A stretch of 63,044 nucleotides of DNA, filler included, from Lenisia limosa (Eukaryota; Protista; Breviatea): assembly GCA_001655205.1 (NCBI GenBank). It is 11 parts of 11 records of this genome, joined end to end, with 100 filler letters (N's around TTAATTAATTAA, not from the genome) between each part and the next. Parts side by side here need not be neighbours in the genome. Positions count along the whole stretch, not along the records: positions 54,529 to 61,023 come from LPNZ01006592.1; 10 more parts are not named here. The stretch is one strand, 5' to 3'. Under the pieces are notes generated by a model that was given only the letters and a program-made list of their open reading frames with translations, did not search any database and was not told where the DNA came from. The first letter of the stretch is position 1. Each line of letters starts with the position of its first letter. Position numbers and translations under genes: made by a program. Below, in pieces: positions 53,625-61,159 of this stretch.

Positions 53625-54620
53625 GTAGGCTTCAAGAGGACTTCACGAATACACTTAGATAGCTTTTTTGCATAGTTAGATCGGTTAACTTGCTATTTTT
53701 TGAAAAGAAAAAAATTATCGAAAAATTTTAAAAGACAAAAATAGATTGTCAACAATTTTGAAAAGACAAAAATAAAATATATTGAAGTGAAATAAACAGA
53801 TATAAACAAAATACAATAGCAATGAACACGAAGAAGAGAAGAAGAGGGAAAACAAAGAAACATTAGTCTGACGTGGCAGCGGACCAGCATACCATGGGAC
53901 CAAAACCCCCCGACAAAATGCTGTTGGCATGCACTCATCAAAACCCCGGCCGCCAAGGCGGAAGCAATCAAACCCAAGCGGAGGTTTGGTCGCGTCAGGT
54001 CAGGAAGACGACGGCGCTCACCAAGACCAGACTGGCCCGGTGAAACATCTTGTCAGGATGTAATGGTACATTGGTAAACCCAAGGCAGGCGGTGGTGGGA
54101 GGCGATCATGTAGTGGCGGAGGCAGTAAGAGCAAAAGATGGCGGAAACGAGGCAGAGACCACAAAACGAAAAGACAAGACAGTTACGGCGGCGGCAGCGA
54201 CGACGAAGACGAGGACAGTCGACAAGAGAGCGAGGGGCAACAGGCAGTTGCGACGACGGAAACTTGAGAGGAGGTAACGTGTAGGTGGAGGCGGCGGCCG
54301 AACACACAGCAGACGGCAAGGGGCAACGAGGCAGTTCACAGCGGCAGATACAACGAAGATGTCCATTTTCGTTGTATCTGCCGTTGATCGATTGACGGGC
54401 GGATCTCATGAGACTGCATGGCGACAGTNNNNNNNNNNNNNNNNNNNNNNNNNNNNNNNNNNNNNNNNNNNNTTAATTAATTAANNNNNNNNNNNNNNNN
54501 NNNNNNNNNNNNNNNNNNNNNNNNNNNNGGGGGGGGGGGGGGGAATCGTATTTTCTTGGCAAAACCTTGTAAGATGACAGTTCAGTCCTTCATTTTCAGT
54601 CCGATAGTAACCCCACTCAG

Positions 54621-54862
54621 GAGAACTTTGATGCGGAGGAGGAGGAGGGCTATGTGCGGTATTGTAATGAGGCCATGTTCAGGATCCATATCCTCGAGCA
54701 CCGTCTGCAGAGGCACGAAGAGAACGCCCTTCAGAAGTGGGGGGGGGGGCAAATACATGCTTATCTTTTCTCATTTTCATATACATTTTCTGAGTTATCA
54801 GATACTCGGAAATGGATGGCCGACTTCGAAGAGATCCGCGGCTTGCCATTCTTTACCAGTAG
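54621..54862 (+). CDS. Last two exons of an uncharacterised protein
   Basis: ENFDAEEEEGYVRYCNEAMFRIHILEHRLQRHEENALQK|YSEMDGRLRRDPRLAILYQ*, joined in frame across a GT-AG intron. Confidence 0.65.
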
Positions 54863-55286
54863 TTTTTACTTTGTATACTATGTAATTATTCCCTTTGAAC
54901 ACTGGAGTTTAATTGTCTTATTGTAATATTATTAACAGATTCTGAGGATGGAGTTCTGCCGCTGAGGGTTGGAAATTTTCAGCACAGTTTAATTAGCCTT
55001 ATTTAACCTTTAATGAAGCACAGTAGTCGAAATTTTTCGTACCGAAGACGGATTGAGGAAGACCATCAGAAAATAAAAAGTCCTCGTTTTCCAAATCGCT
55101 TTTGAGAGTTCGGTCCAAGAGTCAATAAAAGTATTGTGTCGATCATAAAAAAAACTTAAATACCAGTGGGCTGGCTGATTTCAATGAAATCGTGAGATTT
55201 TCAGCTTTCTCGCTTTATTTTCGTTTTTTTTTTATTTTCCAGATGTTTATAACATATGATATCATATGTACTACATGTATGAAACA

Positions 55287-58200
55287 CTAAAGATAGTCAT
55301 AGAACGCAGGCATTGCTTGTCCCTGAAATGTGAGTAAAAAAAAGGTGGTCAGATTAGTTTCAATAGAGACTTTACTGCAACAAAAATGACAAATCCCCCC
55401 CTCCTCCCACGAGTTCCCATATGCCGACACCAACATCCAATTTCTTGGCCAAGGCCACACGGGCGGCAACTGAAGCGGGTGTCGGGAAAAAAGCCTGCAA
55501 AATGAGATGAACAGCTCAGCATACCCTCGCAGTGTACTCTGCCATTGGCGTCCATTCGATGCTGTGCTCCTTTGCCTTATCATTCCACATCAGCCTGACG
55601 CCCTCGTGCTGAAGCATTGGGAGGATCTCTGCTCTTTCTACCGTGCCTCCTCCCAAGTTATACACTCGACCTGGACATTCAATGCCACAGAGTTTCAATC
55701 GAACAAGACTACCCATTTATGAGAAAGTAGTGAGAACCCTCTCGCCCTCACCATAAAAGTTGATCCCGAGGAAGACCTGCATTCCAAGCCCAGTCAGTGG
55801 CTCAACACTCTTCTTGATCCAATTGGCGGGTGCGTTGAATCCTGATGACTGGTTCGGAAAGTCGTAGGTCATAACCTTGAAGAGTCACTATTGCTATGAA
55901 ACTGCATAAAAAAAAAAGACGAACTATTTATTTGTGACAAGCTAGTTCTTGAGGGCTATTCATTAAGGAGAAAAAAAGTACTCAGTATTAGTACGATTTG
56001 TTATGTGATTTCAAGCAAAGCTCTCATGACTCAACCACCACACGTGGACGGCTGCCACCGACGCTTTCATTATTTTGATGTCCTTTGGCTCCAGGTAGTC
56101 GGGCTTGACAACTACAATGACCTCGCGTCCATGTCGCTTGAGGAACGAACCCAACACTGTTGAGAACAAGATGCCCATCCTAAACCGGTAAAAAAAAGCT
56201 CTCCCTCAACTCAGTGTAAACATTATATTACTCCGGTCATGGGATGCTCCAATCTTAATGGAACGCCCAACGCCCTCAATCAGATATCATTTTGCAAAAC
56301 ATAAACAAAACAAGCAATTTTCGTGCGGGGAGAGTGTTAGAGATGACTTGGAGTCTAAACTTTTCGAGGGTCCACGGAAGAAGTTATTTATTGTTACAGC
56401 CGGAGTCCAGTATGAATTCGTTTGTGCCAGTGTAGATTGCGTATGTGGGGATCTGAAGTGCATTGAGAGGATAGCAAGCAGGGGCTCAGGGCTCTTGTGG
56501 ACATTGCCAAGGAGAGTTTGGGTGTCCGGGTTGTTGTTTGCTGAGGCCGAGAGGGGGTCGTTGATAGTTTCGCAGGTGAAGTAGCATAGCTTATCAGCAA
56601 TGGCATTGCCTTTGGCTTCTGGGTATTTCGTTTGCTGTTGGTGGGCCTTGATCCATTTAATTTCGGTGTTATTACCTAAAGTGCGTTGGATGGCGAGGGC
56701 TATGGCGTAAGCTTCTTCTTGGGGGTGTGGGGGGAGTACAGATTTATCTCTGTTAACGGTTTCGACCGCGGCCTTGTTGTCGCAGAAGATTGTCGCTTTT
56801 TCGTCTTGGGGGAAGATTAGGGTTGCGTGCAATATGGCTAGTAACTCTATCAGGAAGATTCTTTTCGGGAAGCTTNNNNNNNNNNNNNNNNNNNNNNNNN
56901 NNNNNNNNNNNNNNNNNNNNNNNNNNNNNNNNNNNNNNNNNNNNNNNNNNNNNNGGGTTGCCGGAGAGTGAGCCGTCAGTGAAGATTTTCAGTGTCTGGT
57001 CTCTGGCTGTAACTGCTCGGGGTGGGATTCTTGAGAGTTGCTGGGTTTCCGGTTTCCTGTAGTTTGCGAGGTCTGGCAGCCTGATGCTGGGCCCGTTCCA
57101 TTGGTTTGAGGACATAGTGAGGTTGTTTGCCGTGAGGAAGAGTAGGACACAAAGTTCTGTTTTCTGGGATCTCCTGGATTCAGCCTGGTTTGGGTTGTTA
57201 TGAGTTCCCCACCATTCAATGTTGTCGGGAGTTTGGACAAATCTTGTTTTTGAGTGTGGGTCTGGGGCTGATAGGAGGTCGGCTATTGTTTGGTAATTGA
57301 GGGGAATGAAGCTGTTAATTTCCTTGAGGTAGCGTTGGTTTTTCCGATGGTCCATTGTTGATATTTCTTGGCCATTTCATGTCGAGAGCTAGGGCTGCCA
57401 GCGGAAGGGGAGTTCTATCATGTCCGATGAGATGATGGCGATTCTGAACTGGAGAAGGATGGGGCAGATTGCCAGGTGCCAAATTTTTGAAGTTTGAAAG
57501 GACAAGAAATGTAAAACAAAGATAGAAAAGATACATAGGAGAGTGGACGGGGACGGACTGGAGGGAGGATGATCTCTTCTGGAGCGGGGCGGTGGGCGGT
57601 CTGGGCAGCGGGTAAACAGACTAGAGCGAGGCGGCGGGATGGTGATTACTTTTGTGGTGACGATCTGCAAACCGTTTTATGGTTTCACCTATCACATAAT
57701 AATGTAATAGGGATGATATTCAATTGTTGTAAATCGAATGGGTGGAGGTATAAGAGAAAGAAAAGGTAAAGTTGGTAGGGTGAGGTTGGAAGACAAAGGT
57801 GAGGTTAGTGAGGTGGTGGGAGGTGAGGTACGTCAGGTACTCCCGGAACGACGGATATGTGGGGCCATGGAAGGTCATGATCGGCTGGGCGGTGAGGTTG
57901 CCCGTGATGACCCCACTGGCGATGCAAAACAAACGCAAAAATGAGTTGTAAGATTTCACCTATCACTATCGGGTGTTAAATATGTTCACCTTTTTCTAAG
58001 CGGGTGCGTGGCCAAATGGAAAGGCGCTTGACTACGGATCAAGAGACTGCAGGTTCGATCCCTGCCGTGCTCGTTTTTTATGATATTTGGATTATTTTTC
58101 TTTACTTTTATGTTTCTTTTTTTTTTTTCTGTTGGATTTTTTCTTCTTTATGTTCTTAAGGTTTTTCTTTTCTTTTCTTTTTTGTTCTTTGGATTATTAT

Positions 58201-60869
58201 TTATGCTTTTATGTTCANNNNNNNNNNGAGTTTGAGATTGTTTTGTTGGATTTTTTTTTTTGGTCTATGATTTCTTTCCTTTTTTTTTAAAACAACCTAT
58301 TATATTTTGATTAATATTTCATGATAATATCGATTGGGTTTCGTTCTATTACTTGTACAAAAAACCAAAACGTAACAAGTCAGGAGGGGGGTAGAGAATA
58401 GAAAAATCTGTAATGCAGATCTGCAGATTTGGCTCCATTTTGTTCCAATAACCTTATTATATCAATTTCATGATTATGACAATATTTCATTTTTATGACT
58501 TATTGTTTAAAAAATGATGAGTGATCATATCATATGCAAAAATCCTATTTGCTCATATAAACATCCTTAAATAATCAATTAATAAAAAATTCACTTCGCC
58601 ATATCCACTCGTGACTTCTTCCACTCTTGGATATGGCATAACATATGCAAAATCCTAATAGTATTATATGGACTACGTAATACATAATATGATATTATAC
58701 TACTACTGTATAATACTAATATTATATACAGATAATAATATTAAGTATATAATATATAATATTGAATATATCAATATATTTACTATTACTACTATTAGAA
58801 AATAATATATAATATTGATATATTATATATCAATATACGATACTATATACTATTACTACTATTAGTATATCATATATACTAATACTATTACTACTATTAG
58901 TATATCATATATACTAATAGTAGTAATAGTATATAGTATCGTATATTGATATATATCATATGATATATATAATATGTGAATATTATATATTATATGTAAT
59001 AATATACTAGTATATAATATCATATGATATATTAATATTGTATGCATCATGTGTGTGCATAGAAAAATGTGCCCGGAGCATTTCTACATAAAACGATGTG
59101 ATATTAATCTCGATGTGATATTTTTGAATTTTGCAAGCCTCTCACTGTCTGCCATTCTTGCCAATTCCTGAGAACACATCAATCACAAGACCGTCAAAGC
59201 CAAAGTCCGAAACAAGCTGCGAAGATGAGCAAAACATGAATCTGGAGCTTTCCAATGAAACTACATGAGTAACACTTCAATTGGATCCATCCACTATACG
59301 ACCACACCCACCTTCAGTAATTGGGCACGGGTTTTTGAACTGTTTGGCTCAGCAAAAACATTCACCTTAAGAATGAGACCAAGGTAACAGGTCAAGGTTA
59401 ACAAAGGAAGGGTTGAAACTAAGCAATAGCTATGATTGAAAAACTAACAACGTAAAAACTGACCCGTTGTTTATCAGACACTGCAATCTCACCATCTCCT
59501 TGCCAGTTTGGAAGCCATCAATGGCAACACGGGGCATAATCTTAATATCTGTAAATTAGTTAAGATGGTCAAAGCTGAATTTAACTTTTTGACAAAATCG
59601 AGATTGTTCTGACACAAATTCCTTTGACCTGTTTTTTCAATATGTGTAAGTACCCCAAGAAAAAGAAATCAATTCTCATCAAAAACTAATATTGTCAATA
59701 TTCAAGTTTGAGTCTAAGGGTTATGTTTGCCAGCCCACCATTATTGGATGCCTTGAGGCTCTGAAGCCAGTCCATTGCAACATCATGCTTGCCATGTACA
59801 ATACCGTCAGGGCGGATAGTGAACCATGATGGAGACACTATGTCGACCTTCTTCGCAAATTTCTGGGAAATAAGATAAAATTCAAAATAAAATCTGTGAC
59901 ATTCATGTATTATTCATTTAAACCGTTACAATCAAGTTGATGTGTAATGACGGTAACTTTTAAAGTAATCGTCACATTATTAAATTGCATTAAATTTGTG
60001 AATTTCAAATGTTGTTCATTGCTCTACCCTCAACATTCCAACCTCAGCGTAGTCATAGCCAATGCTGTTCCAGGGCGTGACGTAGGCCAGGACGGGTTGC
60101 TTGTTCCTCCTCGGGCTGTCAGTGATGGACTGACCTGCCTCATACAGGTCATCAGAAGAGAGGCTTGTCATTTGCTTGAGGCGAGAGTAGCGGTCTTTCG
60201 TCTGGCCCAAGTGCTGGAAATCCGAGAAGGCCGGAGTGGGACGTGGAACTGACTCGATTTCAGCAGTAAACGGCAGGGACTCAACGTCAATTGTTGGAAT
60301 CTGGTTGTGCTCCACTTCAAAATGCTTGACATCCTCAAATTCTGGTTCAGGTTTCTTGGCATCGGCAGCTTGCTTCTCTAAATAGCAATGAATATATCAT
60401 ATTCAATGGGGTGAAGAAATTTGACAGATTTATCAAGGGGAATGGTATATTACCCTATCTAGAAATATTCAAGTGAATCTACCTGCTAAAAACAATTTAT
60501 TTTTTTAAAAAAAACAGGTTAAAAATCCTAATTTGTAGTGTTTTTTCCTTGAAGCGGACATTAACCATTCACTACCTTCCCCCAAATATGTTAATATTAC
60601 AAAATCATATGTTAATACAAAACAATAAAACTGTTTTAGCCTTATTTCAAAATACAATTGGACCCAGTTTGTATATCCCCTCCTAAAGCCCACAAACCAC
60701 TTGAATTAGATATCTTCTGAGAGGCAATGTACATGGACAACCCTCCAGACACTGTCAAAAGGAAAAAGCCAAGGATCACGTAGGTCAGCCATGACTTGGA
60801 GCCCTTATCCTTTTGTGGCTTCCGTCTTTTTGGAGCAAACGCAGCTAATGATGCTTCTCCTTTCACCAT
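55287..60869 (-). CDS. CHID1: Chitinase domain-containing protein 1 (GH18-like, CHID1/SI-CLP) with N-terminal transmembrane anchor
   Basis: WLTYVILGFFLLTVSG anchor; VLAYVTPWNSIGYDYAE|KFAKKVDIVSPSW; FGFDGLVID; MTYDFPNQSSGFNAPANWI..VFLGINFY; AFFPTPASVAARVALAKKLDVGVGIWEL|GQAMPAFYDYL*. The largest intron is 56180-59145. Confidence 0.9.
56287..57682 (-). mobile_element. Non-LTR retrotransposon fragment with RNase H and a C-terminal CxxC
   Basis: LKIFTDGSLSG..(gap)..RVTSHIAELLAILHATL..ATIFCDNKAAV..IKWIKAH..GNAIADKL (D-E-D-H-D RNase H pattern of non-LTR type), then ENCLFC. Intron-free; RT not present. Confidence 0.78.
57696..57953 (-). mobile_element. 258-bp 5'-truncated retro-insertion with 13-bp TSD and ATT-type tail
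   Basis: TTTCACCTATCAC at 57683-57695 and 57954-57966. The minus strand is open to a stop and then ends in ATTACATTATTAT immediately before the TSD. Confidence 0.7.
58002..58073 (+). tRNA. tRNA-Arg (anticodon ACG)
   Basis: Full cloverleaf; anticodon stem CTTGA/TCAAG with ACG at 58034-58036; T-arm GCAGG-TTCGATC-CCTGC; A and B boxes; three G-U pairs in the acceptor stem. Confidence 0.95.
58074..58079 (+). terminator. Pol III oligo-T terminator
   Basis: TTTTTT directly after the discriminator base. Confidence 0.85.
58650..59050. repeat. Extremely AT-rich low-complexity tract (TAT/TAC-like microsatellite decay)
   Basis: Almost only A/T with interspersed tac/gta units. Confidence 0.85.
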
Positions 60870-61159
60870 CTTAGTGGGTACTGGGAGTTTTGGTGGGAGA
60901 CTCCACGTGAAGGTGACTACTCTCTTTGACACTTCCAACCTTCTTCCAATTCATCAACAAAAAACACTTCTTTGTTGTTTTCTGTCGATTTGTTTGTTTG
61001 TTTGTTGTTTGTGAAAATTGGTTNNNNNNNNNNNNNNNNNNNNNNNNNNNNNNNNNNNNNNNNNNNNTTAATTAATTAANNNNNNNNNNNNNNNNNNNNN
61101 NNNNNNNNNNNNNNNNNNNNNNNAACAAAAACTCTGTTAATAACACACAAGTTTTTTAA

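Follow-up and report, generated by a model that had tools for sequence, protein, structure and literature searches.

A 258-bp segment bracketed by an exact 13-nt direct repeat lies 48 nt upstream of a tRNA-Arg(ACG) gene in Lenisia limosa, and behind it, on the opposite strand to the tRNA, follows a decayed retroelement remnant with a probable RNase H domain. Our best, still tentative reading of this arrangement, to which we assign a probability of roughly 45%, is a short retro-insertion at position -48 that displaced an older copy of the same orientation, as under Pol III-guided integration. The locus occupies part of LPNZ01006592.1, at positions 54529-61023 of the window, by which we mean the whole stretch of 63,044 nucleotides that was analysed, filler included. 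All coordinates given here count along this window. The present evidence, coming from one decayed locus, is suggestive.

The tRNA-Arg(ACG) gene is the one tRNA gene in the piece 54529-61023 and was placed at 58001-58074 by ARAGORN and at 58002-58073 by Rfam (RF00005, 59.6 bits, E 2.4e-11). It has a regular cloverleaf and a canonical T-loop/B box, with G-U at three of the seven pairs of the acceptor stem, and its discriminator base is followed by a T6 terminator (58074-58079); gene and terminator together span 58002-58079 on the plus strand. Counted from the tRNA +1 at 58002, the bracketed segment is separated from the gene by 48 nt (57954-58001), including the second copy of the 13-mer. The 35-nt spacer that follows this copy (57967-58001, plus strand) contains a TATA-like TTAAATAT at 57976-57983 (-26 to -19) and is free of C-skew.

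The repeat, TTTCACCTATCAC, is exact at both 57683-57695 (distal copy) and 57954-57966 (tRNA-proximal copy, -48 to -36 relative to the tRNA +1), with the 258 bp of 57696-57953 between the copies. The first-pass annotation had described this segment, its perfect 13-bp repeat and a tRNA-Arg(ACG) gene 48 bp away, all of which were recovered at the same coordinates. Speaking of an insert already interprets the segment. It is treated here as a candidate short retro-insertion on the minus strand, with the sense taken from its composition and the neighbouring ORF only, and the 13-mer as a candidate target-site duplication. In the 6.5-kb piece TTTCACCTATCAC is the sole exact 13-mer direct repeat with copies less than 1 kb apart, low-complexity sequence excluded, and the match grows leftward to 19 of 22 nt (57674-57695 against 57945-57966). 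Past this extension, similarity between the sequences that follow the repeats drops to the level of shuffles. A tandem duplication of a 271-nt unit was rejected, as the units resemble each other outside the 22-nt match only as shuffles do and an apparent MAFFT alignment failed the shuffle test.

How much weight the repeat can carry depends on where it is looked for. Anywhere in 3.5 kb, an exact 13-mer direct repeat with a spacing of 50-1000 nt appeared in 5% of dinucleotide shuffles; as about one such repeat is expected per 61 kb, the repeat by itself is unremarkable. The local chance test asked for one copy no more than 60 nt upstream of the tRNA and a partner within the adjoining 1 kb. On these terms a repeat of at least 13 nt was present in 0.14% of shuffles and one of at least 11 nt in 2%, and the 19/22 extension makes pure chance even less likely than the 0.14% figure. 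It counts against the best reading that a coincidence of p ~0.001 will turn up now and then if many tRNA genes are inspected. With regard to the flanking duplication of variable length that characterises non-LTR elements and target-primed reverse transcription, what was found is the exact 13-nt direct repeat with its local chance of 0.0014.

The segment itself offers few further clues to its origin. At its minus-strand 3' end it reads CATTATTAT, in which an ATT-type tail had been seen before. Because this end comprises 8 nt only and ATTATTAT is found three times in the 6.5-kb piece, it provides no evidence of a retroelement tail. A comparison for a 3' end shared with an autonomous element showed no similarity, though the remnant is itself without a 3' end and the tail of the segment is 8 nt long. 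The segment was also found to have no similarity over its length to the neighbouring remnant or to P0001, a relative of the remnant described below, and the protein word search found no homologue of its 79-aa ORF. Word search, exact look-ups and a scan of JGI metagenomes yielded no other copy of the 258 bp. A tRNA-derived SINE or known RNA family was rejected as well, since ARAGORN and Rfam gave no tRNA or SINE signal in the segment and detected only the tRNA gene itself. So was a DNA transposon: the ends of the segment carry no terminal inverted repeats, and none was seen among the 25 longest inverted repeats listed.

The remnant adjoins the distal 13-mer on its far side from the tRNA and lies on the same minus strand as the proposed sense of the segment. 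It covers 56318-57376, contains the assembly gap 56876-56954, is frameshifted with one in-frame stop and has lost its 3' end; it likely extends to about 57682. In its minus-strand ORF system the RNase H signature D-E-D-H-D is found with the residues in the right order, namely D at 56975-56977 (motif IFTDGS), E at 56845-56847 (IELLAIL), D at 56779-56781 (FCDNK), H at 56641-56643 (KAHQQ) and D at 56593-56595 (NAIADKL). The Pfam RNase_H match has an E-value of 0.0038, under the curated cut-off, and in an ESM Atlas feature search RNase H accounted for 19 of the 30 nearest named clusters, with scores of 0.91-0.92. Neither phmmer nor a small profile returned a match in the PDB, and the AF2 model built on a three-sequence alignment had a pLDDT of only 34.8, too low for use. 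Judged from its motifs and these matches, the assignment as RNase H is probable. No RT or endonuclease (APE) domain was detected in any frame up to the tRNA. Between the RNase H ORF and the distal 13-mer runs a C-rich stretch (57377-57682, minus strand) whose frame 0 is nearly open and in which Pfam recognises no domain. It may belong to the older remnant as its 5' part, or else to a single contiguous one. This same-strand RNase H remnant behind the segment was missed by the first-pass annotation and gives independent support to its reading, which is partly supported.

Relatives of the RNase H ORF are extremely sparse, and all of them are found in ENA only. The sole word-search match is P0001, an ENA ORF fragment. 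Scanned by HMMER with the RNase H of the window, 1.84 billion representative proteins yielded three matches at E <= 0.001, two of which are unnamed ENA ORF fragments (P0001 and P0002) and the third a spurious repetitive protein; a named relative was not among them, and cluster look-ups likewise gave neither names nor accessions. P0001 covers 56586-56318 in two frames with 86% and 78% identity and one in-frame stop, whereas P0002 is 41-43% identical to the remnant. The homology to P0001 ends at 56318, where the 3' end of the older remnant is lost, and P0001 runs on beyond it with 71 residues that match nothing in the piece. These residues include a zinc-knuckle-like motif after the RNase H and give a weak zf-RVT match (E 0.0037), on the strength of which the remnant is probably of the non-LTR type. 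An 18-nt similarity between 56293-56310 and 57923-57940 was considered as shared zinc-knuckle coding and dismissed, as tblastn with P0001 residues 101-171 found nothing in the piece. A 47.6-kb ENA contig encodes P0004, to which the ORF upstream of the RNase H is 100% identical across 95% of the query. Reading across the gap 56876-56954, P0004 shows that the sequence at this point holds a poly-Pro (poly-C) tract and a frameshift. P0004 is also present letter for letter in the ESM Atlas, which together with the ENA-only relatives would suggest a metagenome-derived eukaryote. An ESM Atlas search with the N-terminal 135 residues of P0004 was uninformative, with every score below 0.9. By exact look-up, none of ten window ORFs was present in the protein collection, and no related loci were found in JGI metagenomes, IMG/VR or GTDB genomes.

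Strand composition links the segment with the remnant. On the minus strand the C-skew is +0.34 to +0.36 in the RNase H ORF, +0.43 in the 306-nt flank 57377-57682 and +0.51 in the 258-bp segment (C 0.36, G 0.12). It is about 0 or negative in the host exons, -0.35 in the native-looking intron end (56191-56317) and -0.29 in the tRNA spacer. The C-skew domain begins at 56318, where the homology to P0001 ends, runs to about 57900 and gives out at that end of the bracketed segment which is nearest the tRNA. An excess of T over A is common to flank and segment; in the RNase H ORF A exceeds T. The minus-strand C-skew hence ties the 258 bp to retroelement-type sequence, which would place the 5' end of the segment towards the tRNA. 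The result cuts both ways, as one contiguous remnant would look equally so.

The tRNA gene and both retroelement pieces lie inside a host gene. Human CHID1 (3BXW) is the best match of two minus-strand ORFs, at collinear positions, with 60016-60315 matching residues 78-98 and 55717-55872 matching residues 259-304; individually these matches are weak (E 0.053 and 0.014, respectively). Translation of the region revealed additional CHID1-like exons. Exon d ends at 59146 and exon e begins at 56179, separated by a 2,966-nt intron (56180-59145, minus strand) with the donor GTGAGA at 59145 and an acceptor TTTAG ending at 56180. As the two exons join in frame (...KNGRQ|MGILF...), the tRNA gene, which is antisense to the CHID1-like gene, and both retroelement pieces are all placed within this one intron. 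The same in-frame junction across 59146/56179, which does not include the segment, also led us to discard the segment as a host-gene exon. A tract of 67% A and a repeat block of 16% GC are found in the same intron. With neighbouring introns of roughly 150-250 nt, it is about ten times longer than these, which is consistent with colonisation by insertions.

In the best reading, the older element copy would have been joined by a later one, the 258 bp representing a heavily 5'-truncated or non-autonomous copy. Target-primed reverse transcription from nicks staggered by 13 nt, at about -48 and -35, would have placed it at the 5' junction of the earlier element, whose distance from the tRNA at that time would have been about 48-60 nt. 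A preference for the Pol III complex (TFIIIB/TFIIIC), of the type described for TRE5 and NLTR-B, may have guided both insertions; two successive insertions of the same orientation at one distance are what a Pol III-guided preference produces. From the arrangement we infer three things: a target-site duplication in the repeat, a common family for segment and remnant, and a part for TFIIIB/TFIIIC. The tRNA-targeting step rests on a single locus, and one locus fits targeting but cannot prove it.

The main rival, somewhat less probable, is that the region from about 56318 to 57953 is one contiguous decayed remnant whose 13-mer repeat is internal, small or incidental, and no target-site duplication, that no tRNA targeting took place and that the end near the tRNA is an accident of debris build-up in the intron. 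The near-identical minus-strand composition of segment and flank (C 0.36 and 0.37, G 0.12 and 0.15, T above A in both) agrees with such a remnant, as do the unbroken run of C-skew up to about 57900, the want of a convincing 3' tail on the 258 bp and the blank searches for another copy of the segment. Also in its favour, a 13-mer repeat of this sort is expected about once in 61 kb, and the other repeats in the intron mark it as a general insertion sink. The position of the repeat is harder to accommodate, because just 0.14% of shuffles had a repeat of 13 nt or more with a copy among the last 60 nt ahead of the tRNA, the 19/22 extension uncounted. Moreover, around the junction the stretch 57660-57719 dips to a GC content of 0.33 and has a C-skew of 0.00, as at the end of an element, and even a contiguous remnant would have its 5' end 35-48 nt from the tRNA +1 in the TRE5 orientation, for which the chance in a 2.9-kb intron is well under 1%.

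The same positional argument bears on an insertion that was real, with a real duplication, but had no preference for tRNA genes, such as a stray LINE-mediated retrocopy, a SINE-like insertion or repair filler DNA. In its favour are the exact flanking 13-nt repeat, the want of any relation that could be detected between the segment and either the RNase H remnant or P0001, and the tolerance of introns for insertions. Such an insertion would nevertheless have had to hit the 44-54 bp window by chance, correctly oriented and right beside an older retroelement of the same strand composition, and the poly(A) expected of an mRNA retrocopy is missing along with any tRNA or SINE signal; we regard it as improbable. 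An artefact of assembly or scaffolding, with sequence wrongly joined or duplicated around the repeat, appears very improbable. The piece, from a scaffold taken as metagenome-derived, does have two N gaps (56876-56954 and 58218-58227), and homopolymer tracts such as the poly-C tract revealed by P0004 break assemblies. Neither gap, however, falls at a junction, 13 nt is far below the k-mers of assemblers, and the part covered by P0004 is reproduced without a mismatch in an ENA contig. The short retro-insertion at -48 in front of an older copy remains our preferred reading at the probability given above.

For retrotransposons of compact genomes, insertion beside tRNA genes is a "safe-haven" strategy familiar from textbooks. 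The duplications of Ty3, Ty1, DGLT-A and Skipper-2 are made by an integrase and are short and fixed at about 5 bp, and the elements bear LTRs; in contrast, the repeat here has 13 nt, and there are no LTRs and no terminal inverted repeats. These LTR retrotransposons of yeast (Ty3, Ty1) and dictyostelids (DGLT-A, Skipper-2), whose hosts have compact genomes, are guided by the Pol III complex to sites beside tRNA genes (PMC5911963, PMC5006619). Our search of the open-access literature found non-LTR targeting upstream of tRNA genes reported only for dictyostelids (TRE5, TRE3, NLTR-A/B).

The geometry is comparable to that published for the TRE5 elements, which integrate 44-54 bp ahead of the mature tRNA coding sequence, oriented oppositely to the gene and with their 5' end turned towards it (PMC5911963, PMC3159450). 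The TRE5-like geometry claimed by the first-pass annotation stands for the distance, as the segment at this single locus is 48 nt from the tRNA +1 and within that range, and for the remnant, the RNase H ORF of which lies on the minus strand, opposite to the tRNA. For the 258-bp segment the orientation is a suggestion drawn only from C-skew and its 8-nt AT-rich end. In Dictyostelium discoideum, TRE5-A/B/C copies are frequently 5'-truncated and newer copies push older ones outward (PMC5911963, PMC3159450, PMC5006619). Unlike the locus described here, TRE5 elements end in oligo(A), where the segment ends in CATTATTAT, and their ORF2 has an APE-RT-ZF architecture without RNase H (PMC5911963). As the adjacent remnant carries an RNase H signature, membership in TRE5, or the relation to TRE5 itself that had been proposed, is unlikely. 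The broader proposal of a Pol III-tethered non-LTR family in this genome would be an extrapolation from this single locus.

An RNase H domain downstream of the RT is found in the non-LTR elements Pp_NLTR-B of Polysphondylium pallidum and Dp_NLTR-A of D. purpureum, the former of which prefers positions ~50 bp upstream of tRNA genes in a TRE5-like manner (PMC5006619). Pp_NLTR-B is therefore the closest known element in architecture, combining RNase H with the TRE5-like position, and as a precedent in nature it speaks for the best reading, although the remnant here differs in that the RT is absent. A zinc-knuckle-like motif follows the RNase H in P0001, whereas none is given for the NLTR elements (PMC5006619). 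The blank HMMER result for named relatives would argue against a close relationship to NLTR elements but not against a distant one. That a protist outside the dictyostelids has an RNase H-bearing non-LTR lineage that independently targets sites ~48 bp upstream of tRNA genes, head-to-head, is a possible but on balance unlikely generalisation. If true, it would add a further convergent case to the TRE5/NLTR-B solution, one from outside Amoebozoa and fungi. It would also mean that target-primed reverse transcription has repeatedly used the Pol III pre-initiation complex as a docking platform, and provide a second system in which to ask which element protein reads TFIIIB/TFIIIC. Targeting at this locus, if real, would be convergent or architecturally nearer to NLTR-B.

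On the minus strand of the part of the window that comes from the tRNA-bearing record (54529-61023), a CHID1-like gene (chitinase domain-containing protein 1) extends across the whole piece. One of its introns, at 56180-59145 on the same strand, has a length of 2,966 nt, compared with ~150-250 nt for the neighbouring introns. A tRNA-Arg gene lies antisense within this intron, together with remnants of retroelements and AT-rich repeats.

The tRNA-Arg(ACG) gene, at 58002-58073, has a canonical B box, and its cloverleaf is likewise canonical outside the acceptor stem. Three of the seven acceptor-stem pairs are G-U (G2-U71, U4-G69 and G5-U68), and the gene may be slightly degenerate. Directly 3' of its terminator lies a tract (58074-58290) in which A makes up 67% of the minus strand, the plus strand being T-rich; it holds runs of T12 and T11, four copies of the motif AATCCAA(C/A) and a gap of 10 N at 58218-58227. 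This tract could represent stacked A-rich tails or else plain low-complexity DNA. Within the same intron, a tandem-repeat block at 58641-59050 with a GC content of 16% is built from units of 35 and 67 nt and includes inverted-repeat arms of 70 nt (58818-58887 and 58892-58961) with 91% complementarity. The block may be what is left of a hairpin-forming repeat, or else a MITE-like element.

Long homopolymer runs recur in this genome, here as G15 at the edge of the piece (54529-54543), G12 (54739-54750) and T12 (58114-58125), and they seem to break its assembly. The 79-N assembly gap at 56876-56954 is located at a poly-C (poly-Pro) tract and is bridged by P0004, an ENA ORF from a different assembly of this sequence, whose read-through reveals a frameshift in the RNase H ORF at the gap.

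A 98-aa ORF on the minus strand (60642-60938) is predicted to form one hydrophobic helix, and its match to a CrgA-like Pfam entry is weak (E 0.0034, below the cut-off). It probably belongs to an adjacent gene for a small membrane protein; this would point to a genome with densely packed genes.
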